Positions 50,514 through 52,430 are shown, counted from the whole stretch's first letter. The stretch is 63,179 bases of DNA, filler included, from Octopus bimaculoides (GCF_001194135.2; 4 parts of 4 records of this genome joined end to end with filler, not necessarily neighbours in it), one strand, 5' to 3'. Translations and numbers: made by a program. Notes: a model not told the origin generated them from the sequence alone.

Positions 50514-50515
50514 AT

Positions 50516-50529
50516 GAGGCATTTGGCTA
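50516..50529 (-). other. 14-bp exact 28S rRNA R2-target fragment (TAGCCAAATGCCTC) at the R2 3' junction
   Basis: Plus strand gaggcatttggcta is the reverse complement of the conserved 28S sequence immediately 3' of the R2 nick (..TTAAGG^TAGCCAAATGCCTC). Confidence 0.88.
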
Positions 50530-52430
50530 TTGTGAATATTGACTGCCAATTCTTTCCCTTTGATTATAGTGGGCGGTCACACTCATGCCTCGTCATTAGT
50601 GACATGCACGAACGCAGGCACTAATGATGAGGCATTCCTGAGGCGACTCCCACTGTCCTGCCAAGGGAACATGTGAACCACCTTATAATTTTAGTTACTG
50701 CTAGTCATCATACAGGGATCCTGCCTGCAAGATCCCTATGCTGAGAGCTAATCTCTCACCGTATGTGTAGGATAGCTGTCCTGCTGAGTAGTCTTCGGAA
50801 TGACCTGTCCTTAATGCCCAAGGCATCTAGCGCCGCACTCGCAGGCCAGCACCAGGCACCACAGGCATTGATTGGGAGTCCATGCACTTCTACCAGCTGA
50901 TCAAACTCTTGCAAAAGCAATGGTATGATCAGTCAATACTTGCGTACTTTCTCAAGAGATGCCTCTCTCAAGGCATCTCCCTGCTCCGGCTGGATGGTCA
51001 CATCTACTACTACTACTTTCTCAGGACAGTTAAAAACTAAGTCAGGTATCAGCCTGTAGCCTCCCACAATGTACGGAGGCTCCACACTAATACTCCAGCC
51101 ATAGGTGGCAGCTTCTTTCGCTACCAGATTACAGATTTTGTTGTGTCTGGCAAGTCGTGGCCCTTTAAGGGTGCCACAATCTCTGCTGACGTGAGATATT
51201 GTCTCCGCCCCTACTCTACACTTTGGACACATGGAGTCCACTCGACCACCATGTATCATGGTCTCTCAGGTGGGAAATACATTGGAGCACATCTTGAGTA
51301 AACTCAAGAAGCACTTCTCTGTAATCCCACCAGGTCTACTTATCCAACTATTGCCAATCACATCCCCACAAAACGCTGCCACACACGCCCCGTGCACTGG
51401 ATGGGCCACCCATCTATGGGAGTGCACCAGCCAGATGTCAAGGTCATATTCGGTAGTATCAACAGGGAGCAACAGCAAGTCAAAGGAAGCTACTAATTGG
51501 TGATTCCGTTGGGCTAATCCTGCCGAATCAGCAATCTTTTTTACGGAGGCATATCTCGACATCAGAAGGCGAAGATTACGGCGGATGACACATTTGGGGA
51601 TCAGCCTCACCATCTGGTGATGTCTTAACCCACCATCACACCGGCTGCTATATAGAAAGGAAGAAGAAGTGTTATCTGAGAGATGAAGAATCCACTTAAC
51701 TCCCACACGGATGACGGTGTCAAGTCTCTCGAGAATTCCTCTTGACGGTAGCACCTGCGTGAGACTATAAAACAGTCTTGGCAAATAGTACTGCTGTAAC
51801 AAGAGGAATTTCTGTCAGGGTTTCAGTGGATCCCTGCAAATCTTATTGATATCCAGGGACACCTGCTCCACTGAATCTAAACAAAATTCCTGACTCGAGC
51901 TTGAAGTCCATGTAGGAACATTAAGTCCTAGGTAGGACACCTTCTCTCCTGGTTCTACCTTTCTCATCGCATTACCATGGTAACTCGGTGGAGTGCTATT
52001 GTTGACAAGACAGGACTTGCCCCAACCACGAATGGAGAACCATGCACACTTACCGATGTTGATTCCTAGCCTGACTGTACGACAGAACTCCAGGGATCTA
52101 CCCACAAGAGCCTGGAGACCATTGTGTGACCCAGCGACTAGGACCTGATCCCCTCAACACTGAGACCTCCGCTGTCTGACAGAACATCTAATAGGGTTGG
52201 TCGCAATGTTAAAGAGGACTGGCGAAAGCACATCCCTTTGTCTAACACCCAGGCGAATCTTGATGCGCTCGCTAAGTTGCCGACCGACTGAGAATCATAG
52301 ATCCCCTCCATGAGTGCTATAATGTGCTCATGGAAGCCAAGCCTGGCGGGACCCATTCCTATAAAGAATGGTGTCAAGCAGGATGACATCCATGCCCCAA
52401 CTGCTGCTTTTACTCATGTTTTTGCTAAGG
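50530..52430 (-). mobile_element. R2-clade (RLE) non-LTR retrotransposon, 5'-truncated and decayed, with 3' UTR
   Basis: GVRQRDVLSPVLFNI; KVSYLG; QYYLPRLFYSL..DGGL; zinc knuckle CPKC-x8-H-x4-C; RLARHNKI; PDLV..VVVDVTI; KVRKY; VHGLPINACGAW..LGI..RRLLSR*. The YADD motif appears deleted. Confidence 0.92.

Follow-up and report, generated by a model that had tools for sequence, protein, structure and literature searches.

A 5′-truncated R2 retrotransposon copy outside ribosomal DNA in Octopus bimaculoides that ends on a short 28S tail

The DNA considered here is a stretch of 63,179 nucleotides from Octopus bimaculoides (GCF_001194135.2), hereafter the window, which consists of four parts joined end to end with filler. 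One of these parts, called the piece below, carries the remnant of an R2-type retrotransposon. Its 3′ end abuts a few nucleotides of 28S ribosomal RNA (rRNA) sequence at a place that is not ribosomal DNA (rDNA), and its 5′ end is joined to a long interspersed nuclear element (LINE) of the AP-endonuclease (APE) type. All positions are counted along the whole stretch, the element lies on the minus strand, and 28S positions are numbered such that +1 is the first nucleotide after the R2 nick site, AAGG^TAGC. The features of the locus are given below, where L001 denotes the orthologous locus of O. sinensis and L002 a second R2 copy in O. bimaculoides.

49845..50513, no strand assigned: tandem array of 4.4 units of 154 bp, found by Tandem Repeats Finder (71% matches) and self-BLAST; the junction-side unit is truncated.
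50516..50529, minus strand: 28S tail, 28S +1..+14 (TAGCCAAATGCCTC), an exact 14-mer that is identical in L001 at 11183-11196.
50530..50755, minus strand: R2 3′ untranslated region (3′UTR), 226 nt long; it follows the stop codon (50756-50758) and terminates in the canonical 3′ end ...ATATTCACAA; alignable to the 3′UTR of L002.
50585..50670, plus strand: 28S-like block, antisense to the element, colinear with 28S +8..+101 with three indels; exact blocks of 12, 9, 11 and 11 nt; includes the long hairpin at 50583-50637.
50756..52445, minus strand: R2 open reading frame (ORF) remnant, with the reverse transcriptase (RT) from just before motif A, the thumb, a CCHC knuckle (CPKC...H...C) and a restriction-like endonuclease (RHN...PDLV...VVDV...EKVRKY).
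52434..52446, minus strand: fusion point of the LINE and R2; the last LINE codons read ...FPES and the first R2 codons align to ...PAQLRIPRLEVAFMD of L002; identical in L001.
52446..54160, minus strand: APE-type LINE, the 5′ ~60% of its ORF, with the AP-endonuclease, the linker and the RT N-terminal region to motif 1; interrupted by stops and frameshifts.

Read in the sense of the element, the R2 3′ end ...cagtcaatattcacaa (50545 to 50530) is followed directly by TAGCCAAATGCCTC (50529 to 50516), which matches 28S +1..+14 at 14 of 14 positions. The R2 terminus ...ggcagtcaatattcacaa stops at 50530, and after TAGCCAAATGCCTC come the letters ATT and then the tandem array. The tail might be as long as 16 nt (to 50514), at an identity of 15/16 in which CGT reads as CAT, a CpG-type change. 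The 14-mer is the sole match in the window at two or fewer mismatches, with a chance expectation of 0.09, and it sits exactly at the end of a 3′UTR that is recognisable as R2 independently of the tail. The 3′ junction falls exactly at AAGG^TAGC in the window copy, in L001 and in L002. Our comparisons with published octopod R2s refer throughout to the first 400 residues or bases of the sequences in the available part of Table S2 of PMC13188248 (2026), where the same 28S flank is printed for all R2s, four octopods included. The first-pass annotation, made from the sequence alone, had reported this junction with the same 14/14 and 15/16 matches, followed by a 155-bp tandem repeat. The junction was reproduced in full, and the repeat is real, with a period of 154 according to Tandem Repeats Finder.

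On the 5′ side of the R2 copy lies the APE-type LINE, and neither a 28S 5′ junction nor residence in rDNA was found. No rRNA family was matched in the piece with Rfam at E<=10. This lack of rDNA residence defines the copy as ectopic and has no bearing on the family to which the element belongs. That the copy had integrated ectopically was also the view of the first-pass annotation, and it agrees with our findings, given that the locus is not rDNA and that the same junction occurs at the syntenic O. sinensis locus.

The identity of the element was established from its protein sequence. Pfam searches with single ORF fragments were uninformative, and stitched translations were used. A phmmer search against the PDB returned 9nl2 (5.6e-54), 9nl3 (2.3e-50), 9dou (R2Tg; 3.9e-50) and the R2Bm structure 8gh6 (5e-27). 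The best PDB matches are all R2 proteins (E 5.6e-54 to 1e-25) and reveal an R2-type RT and thumb. The motifs CPKC..H....C, RHNKIC, IPDLVF, VVDVTI and EKVRKY align to the same residues in both 9nl2 and 9nl3, which reveals the CCHC knuckle and an endonuclease of the PD-(D/E)xK type. The match to vertebrate three-zinc-finger R2s (1e-54) is far better than that to R2Bm (1e-27), and an 18S-inserted relative (P0024) is only ~25% identical. Among database sequences, the relatives of the R2 half are R2-type proteins of 1000-1300 amino acids. The earlier assignment to R2 is therefore upheld by the protein comparison with the PDB and by a 3′ junction that lies exactly at the R2 site.

Because the PDB alignments begin at chain residue ~527-800 and extend to the C terminus, and because the Pfam RVT_1 profile is aligned only over positions 108-204, its second half, the R2 sequence begins just before RT motif A. 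Judged from its sequence, then, the element is a dead, 5′-truncated copy of the R2 type. Its reading frame is interrupted by at least four in-frame stop codons (52154-52156, 51815-51817, 51266-51268 and 50933-50935) and by a frameshift near 52288-52294, and its amino acid identity to the L001 and L002 copies is 63-76%. The N-terminal zinc finger and Myb region is missing in the window copy, which is truncated at RT motif A, and in L002, and it is present in relatives such as P0009 and in R2-1_OSi. The 5′ end of the element, where a ribozyme resembling that of hepatitis delta virus (HDV) would sit, is missing in all three octopus copies, and an Rfam search of the piece at E<=10 matched neither an R2 3′UTR family nor an HDV-like ribozyme. 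One of the stop codons, an in-frame TGA (PLKP*QKF, CCC TGA CAG), is found at 51815-51817 on the minus strand of the window, at ~9955 in L001 and at 9541-9543 in L002. It might have arisen either by parallel CGA to TGA decay of a CpG or by descent from a source that already carried the stop.

The 3′UTR provides a second line of affiliation. Its terminal motif, GTGtGACCgCCCACt..AAAGGGAAAG, is common to the window copy, L002 and the 28S-resident R2-1_ECi of Eledone, which ties the fossil to the canonical octopod R2 family. For the last 151 nt of the 3′UTR, a single long stem-loop is predicted (z = -3.85).

Upstream of the R2 sequence, the LINE half contains an Exo_endo_phos domain (Pfam E 6e-5) and is 44-48% identical to residues 26-615 of P0049, a protein of 1011 amino acids that carries Exo_endo_phos and a complete RVT_1. 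This alignment ends at residue 615 (LPET|QCGFR), at window position 52446, and goes no further. Residues 616-1011 of P0049 are nowhere in the piece as judged by tblastn and by three-frame reading downstream of the tail, and the LINE thus lacks everything from RT motif 2 onward, including its 3′ end. A 167-residue ORF of the LINE half has about 5000 relatives, of which the full-length ones are 1000-1100 residues long and carry Exo_endo_phos with a complete RVT_1. The join lacks RT motif 2 and about 45 residues, both elements have the same orientation, and DNA alignment with L001 and L002 allows a 4-nt microhomology, CCAG. No target-site duplication of 8 nt or more was found when the 3′ flank was compared with the 1.1 kb upstream of the chimera.

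An AP-endonuclease that precedes an R2-type RT and endonuclease could in principle represent one natural element with two endonucleases. Dualen/RandI elements, reportedly described as dual-endonuclease non-LTR (lacking long terminal repeats) retrotransposons by Kojima and Fujiwara in 2005, have the same order of APE, RT and restriction-like endonuclease on one strand. The octopus locus shares this order and strand, and the break lies within the RT. Moreover, another relative, L004, also has an Exo_endo_phos ORF before its R2-type ORF. However, the octopus halves come from two unrelated families and the RT is incomplete where they meet. The APE half is 44-48% identical to conventional LINE proteins of 1000-1100 residues that have their own complete RVT_1 and a different C terminus. 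The R2 half has 45 relatives, all with RVT_1 only, and those closest to it are full-length zinc-finger/Myb R2 proteins. In addition, the APE ORF of L004 is unrelated to that of the window. We rejected the dual-endonuclease reading, which we consider extremely improbable, since the APE half derives from a conventional LINE family, the RT is incomplete at the join, and no coherent multi-copy unit of APE, RT and restriction-like endonuclease was found. Because RT motif 2 and ~45 residues are missing, because the relatives of the R2 half are ordinary zinc-finger/Myb R2s, and because L002 has no APE part, the locus is evidently a fusion of two unrelated elements rather than a member of a dual-endonuclease family.

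Protein searches returned only three close matches, all of them from octopus. Look-ups of contigs that encode the protein P0001 or an ORF of the window gave no entries. The first of the loci discussed here, L001, lies in the O. sinensis assembly GCA_006345805.1. Its synteny with the window spans ~7 kb (55122 to 47865) at 86-91% identity, and the LINE/R2 fusion, the ...attcacaaTAGCCAAATGCCTCatttgttg junction, the tail and the flanks are all shared. This finding bears directly on whether the junction at 50.5 kb, or the LINE/R2 fusion, might be a chimeric join of reads. The repeats and an N gap in the piece make such an error conceivable, but the fusion, the R2|28S|repeat junction and the flanks all recur in the independent O. 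sinensis assembly, which renders an artefact scarcely credible. Because fusion, junction and flanks are the same at the syntenic locus, the junction is evidently not an assembly error, a concern that the first-pass annotation had itself raised, and the insertion evidently predates the split between O. bimaculoides and O. sinensis. The anatomy given by that annotation can be completed: its R2 end and junction stand, and it had missed the 5′ truncation, the stop codons, the LINE fusion, the age of the insertion and the antisense 28S sequence.

A second octopus locus, L002, is an independent ectopic copy on O. bimaculoides chromosome CM046606.1, next to an ABC-transporter gene. Its R2 sequence is truncated at about residue 380, further 5′ than the window copy, its coding DNA is ~76% identical to that of the window, and its 3′UTR is alignable but diverged. 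Here too the 3′ junction is precise; 90 nt of 28S come next, and the sequence after +90 is unrelated. Compared with O. sinensis 28S as given in the table of PMC13188248, this tail has 82 identities in 90 positions, half of its eight mismatches (4/8) are CpG to TpG changes, and it carries the cephalopod-specific GGATCAA. Neither the window copy nor L002 has upstream 28S at its 5′ end. The R2 copy in L002 appears to interrupt an antisense LINE ORF (..SKFSPPPEIR | PPYEFYKS..), whose halves flank it at 8245-8277 and 10977-11309. This arrangement suggests a clean insertion with little loss of target. A second copy of the antisense LINE was considered as an empty site, and the alignment stops short of the insertion point. 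The census of ectopic copies and their tail lengths that was proposed along with the initial observation has two entries thus far, with 14-16 nt in the window and 90 nt in L002.

The sequence beyond the tail permits an evaluation of how the 14 nt came to be there. By self-BLAST, the self-similarity of the array starts at 50513, 3 nt past the 14-mer. The array is shorter in L001 (11199-11528), with about 2 copies in O. sinensis versus 4.4 in the window, and the rest of the array was not found upstream of the chimera. The 154-bp repeat belongs to a dispersed family. O. sinensis has a second, inverted array at L001 3631-4098, ~7 kb upstream of the R2 tail, and its chimera is thus flanked by inverted 154-bp arrays.

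Perhaps the R2 endonuclease cut a chance 28S-like site within this repeat, in which case the 14 nt would be target DNA. There is precedent for cryptic targets in a neighbouring family, in that non-28S insertions of R1 use sites with 4-9 bp of identity to the 28S target, according to PMC2718515 (here and below, the available part of that paper). However, the 14-mer is absent from the remaining array units of the window and from both L001 arrays, even at two mismatches. The chance of a 14/14 match is about 4e-9 per site, 28S from the AAGG side is missing at the 5′ junction, and no cryptic site would explain the 90 nt of true octopus 28S in L002. We therefore consider a cryptic target very unlikely. 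Of the two mechanisms offered in the first-pass annotation, the copying of a read-through 28S tail is the one favored by the 90-nt tail of L002, and the cryptic target is disfavored by array units that lack the 14-mer. A family of non-specific R2 elements (R2NS) was likewise discarded as a candidate, since both independent ectopic copies carry 28S tails that start at +1.

We consider it probable (roughly 0.7) that the copy originated from an R2/28S read-through RNA, whose reverse transcription took place at an ectopic break. According to the available part of PMC3774820, R2 and 28S are transcribed together, and a 28S-specific R2 lineage, which the first-pass annotation had postulated for this genome, exists in octopods (R2-1_OVu, R2-1_OSi, R2-1_ORu and R2-1_ECi; Table S2 of PMC13188248). 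An ancestral octopus R2 resident in 28S would have been transcribed within the rRNA precursor, and on one R2 RNA a short segment of the downstream 28S would have remained at the 3′ end. This transcript would then have been reverse-transcribed at a break or nick outside rDNA, within or beside the 154-bp array. We infer that synthesis began at the extreme 3′ end of the RNA, such that 28S +1..+14(16) would have been copied along with the R2 3′UTR, and that it continued through the endonuclease, the thumb and part of the RT. The R2 RT reportedly makes use of downstream 28S sequence carried by its RNA template, and such sequence is said to affect priming (work of Luan and Eickbush in 1996). The product would have been joined to the 5′ 60% of a same-orientation APE-type LINE. 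Either the RT would have switched templates to LINE RNA, or the product would have been end-joined into a resident LINE, which lost its 3′ part. With neither the N-terminal DNA-binding domains of R2 nor RT motifs 0-2, the product would have been dead on arrival. Neutral decay would have followed, together with inheritance by at least two octopus species.

We favor read-through reverse transcription because the two independent copies have short tails of unequal length that both start at +1, differ in their 5′ truncations, carry no upstream 28S and lie in unrelated flanks. Unequal 5′ truncations (at RT motif A versus about residue 380) are a hallmark of incomplete reverse transcription. Furthermore, a junction of the form R2 end | 28S +1 (TAGCC) can be inherited only from a 28S-resident donor.

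Several points nevertheless weigh against this account. There is no target-site duplication and no empty site, and the boundaries of the insertion on its 5′ side are undefined. The upstream remainder of the array and the 3′ half of the LINE are absent, such that an extra rearrangement must be assumed. The number of independent tailed copies is two. The shared TGA could reflect descent from one copy that was already dead rather than independent retrotranspositions, although parallel CGA to TGA changes are also plausible. Finally, an RNA intermediate is not something that can be seen in a genome sequence.

Some of these same points are compatible with relocation at the DNA level, in which a piece of 28S bearing R2 moved by ectopic recombination, via extrachromosomal rDNA or as filler at a double-strand break, and was trimmed to R2 plus 14 nt. 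Such a move would keep the canonical R2|28S junction equally well. The locus is rearranged in any case, with the 3′ half of the LINE and part of the array missing, and the shared TGA would fit descent from one dead DNA copy. What speaks against relocation is that in both copies the 5′ breakpoint lies inside R2 without upstream 28S and that the retained 28S is short (14-16 and 90 nt). In addition, the two copies differ in their flanks, which are unrelated, in their 5′ ends and by ~25% in sequence, and L002 resembles a simple insertion into a LINE ORF. Relocation retains some probability because there is no target duplication or empty site, but we regard it as unlikely.

Under reverse transcription of a read-through RNA, the manner of the 5′ fusion is a separate matter. 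A template switch from R2 RNA to APE-LINE RNA in the same event, rather than insertion into a resident LINE with deletion, is a serious possibility to which we would give somewhat less than even odds. The R2 RT is known for template jumping. The two elements have the same orientation and meet at near-homologous RT positions (motif 1-2 against motif A), with the possible CCAG microhomology, and the 3′ 400 codons of the LINE are found nowhere downstream. The antisense 28S block in the 3′UTR could be the scar of a second switch. On the other hand, in vitro the R2 RT has been seen to jump to the 3′ terminus of the acceptor and not to an internal site, a 5′-truncated insertion with target deletion would give an identical picture, and no target-site duplication surrounds the whole chimera. 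A comparable fusion of an R1 5′ part with an R2 3′ part is known from D. simulans (PMC2718515).

The antisense block itself deserves separate consideration. Its local alignment score against 28S is 54.5, compared with 17.0±2.6 in 1000 shuffles (maximum 29). It is the top-scoring place in the piece, and the four best 28S-region matches all fall within 155 nt. The initial statement that the window holds no other rDNA is thus correct with regard to rRNA family matches in the piece at E<=10, but it overlooked this block. Relative to 28S, the block differs by two deletions, one of 5 nt in a loop and one of 24 nt, and by an insertion of ~25 nt, which is an inverted copy of +7..+29 and forms the long hairpin at 50583-50637. 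The block is kept in the ortholog L001, and it is absent from L002 and from the first 400 nt of the published 3′UTRs of R2-1_OSi, R2-1_ECi and R2-1_SAt. An exact scan of JGI metagenome contigs for the hairpin arm GTCACTAATGACGAGGCAT gave four chance matches, in bacterial coding DNA. When the 3′UTR is followed by 28S +1..109, the predicted fold shifts to pairing between the UTR and 28S, with a change in folding energy (ΔΔG) of -21.5 kcal/mol versus -7.6±3.6 kcal/mol for shuffles.

It is tempting to speculate that a sub-lineage of octopod R2 elements possesses an antisense copy, ~90 nt long, of the 28S just downstream of its own insertion site, and that this copy, placed 55 nt before the 3′ end of the element, serves in functional pairing, although we consider this doubtful. 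If it were true, the 3′UTR of the co-transcript would pair with downstream 28S to form a long duplex that brackets the junction, and the internal hairpin in the released RNA would mimic this duplex. Such pairing could set or protect the RNA 3′ end together with its 28S tail, or it could aid in finding the target. To our knowledge, a function for pairing of this kind has not been described for R2, and as a lineage feature the block would constitute an RNA element of a type new to site-specific retrotransposons. With one insertion event as the only witness, it is equally allowed that the block is the one-off scar of a template switch during that single insertion.

Other elements occur nearby and in the relatives. 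A 678-N assembly gap in the piece creates a false ORF of 600 amino acids (45718-46395 and 46396-47474, minus strand). The real part of this ORF is RT-like (..FDINNYYSSI.., ..YRDDALLI..) and has no Pfam or PDB match, and it is an unclassified retroelement fragment. At 55212-55632, on the plus strand and hence opposite to the chimera, lies an RVT_1 ORF of another LINE that is cut by the edge of the piece, and L001 has a 68% similar copy of it at 17153-17630. Two microsatellites, (TA)48 at 47838-47934 and (TG)17 at 54844-54878, lie behind sub-threshold Rfam matches to mir-297, mir-466 and MIR9555, and the mir-297/466 matches in the piece were dismissed as microsatellites. None of the relatives from ENA metagenomes (L003-L007) is a 28S-site R2 with a readable junction. 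L004 (ERZ26222911, 969-5317) encodes P0009, an R2 protein of full length that has three zinc fingers as well as Myb. No 28S lies within 1.3 kb downstream, and the Exo_endo_phos ORF that precedes the R2 ORF on the same strand is unrelated. L007 (ERZ25068762, 1-11329) is an rDNA unit with linked 5S. Its 18S is interrupted at about Rfam model position 1116 by an R2-superclade ORF (R8-like), and a second such ORF stops at the point where the 28S sequence picks up again, model position 1891, which lies about 560 nt upstream of the R2 site.

The value of such copies lies in what they might record. It is not settled how R2 RNA acquires its 3′ end in vivo or how much 28S is retained there. Gene-insertion templates are given a short 28S-complementary tail by design. 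If the read-through origin is correct, ectopic fossils would record the natural tail of the template (14-16 nt here and 90 nt in the second copy), and the distribution of tail lengths could be obtained from a census of ectopic copies without RNA work. In other respects the locus is a neutral pseudogene, and no function is expected of it.

The literature searched contained no account of ectopic octopus R2 copies or of the tails that they carry. The octopod 28S-resident R2s were reported in 2026, and the Drosophila non-rDNA R2s and the R1/R2 fusion in 2009; the octopus copy is a new instance of what these systems exhibit. R2-clade copies at non-28S sites are also represented by R2NS-1_SMed and R2NS-1_CSi among the non-specific families of Kojima et al. 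2016 (PMC5035012). Those families comprise many near-identical copies without 28S flanks, whereas the octopus copies have 28S tails and would therefore derive from 28S-resident donors. The same study describes fish R2s, as well as R2Hm-B, in which 28S-derived sequence is likewise part of the R2 3′UTR. In fish, the 28S-like part takes the place of the 28S that was lost when the element inserted, and it is associated with an apparent shift of the 5′ insertion boundary. The octopus block, in contrast, runs antisense to the element, and its counterpart is the 28S stretch +8..+101, downstream of the nick.

The closest relatives are the octopod elements R2-1_OSi, R2-1_OVu, R2-1_ORu and R2-1_ECi (PMC13188248), which come from the same host group and have the same 3′ junction with TAGCCAAATGCC. 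R2-1_ECi has the 3′UTR terminal motif GTGGGACC.CCCAC..GGGAAAG in common with the window copy, and the N-terminal end of L002 overlaps and resembles the protein of the octopod 28S-resident R2s at ...ILGEE..CP.PM.... These elements are full-length, with three zinc fingers and Myb, whereas the window copy is 5′-truncated, dead, outside rDNA and fused to a LINE. Its antisense 28S block is not seen in the first 400 nt of the octopod entries.

The nearest parallel in kind comes from Drosophila, for which Stage & Eickbush 2009 (PMC2718515) reported incomplete non-rDNA copies of R2 in five species and an array of R1-5′/R2-3′ fusions outside rDNA in D. simulans. The octopus copy is likewise incomplete and is likewise a hybrid of an APE-type 5′ end (R1 in Drosophila) and an R2 3′ end. 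The hosts belong to different phyla, and the Drosophila copies are young (1-2% divergent), whereas the octopus copy is older than a speciation event. In the available part of that paper, 28S tails are not described for the Drosophila copies. The partner LINE also differs, being the rDNA-specific R1 in Drosophila and an element that is not rDNA-specific in octopus. The octopus copy demonstrates that R2 occasionally escapes rDNA in cephalopods and can become fused to an unrelated LINE, in parallel with the R1/R2 hybrid of Drosophila.

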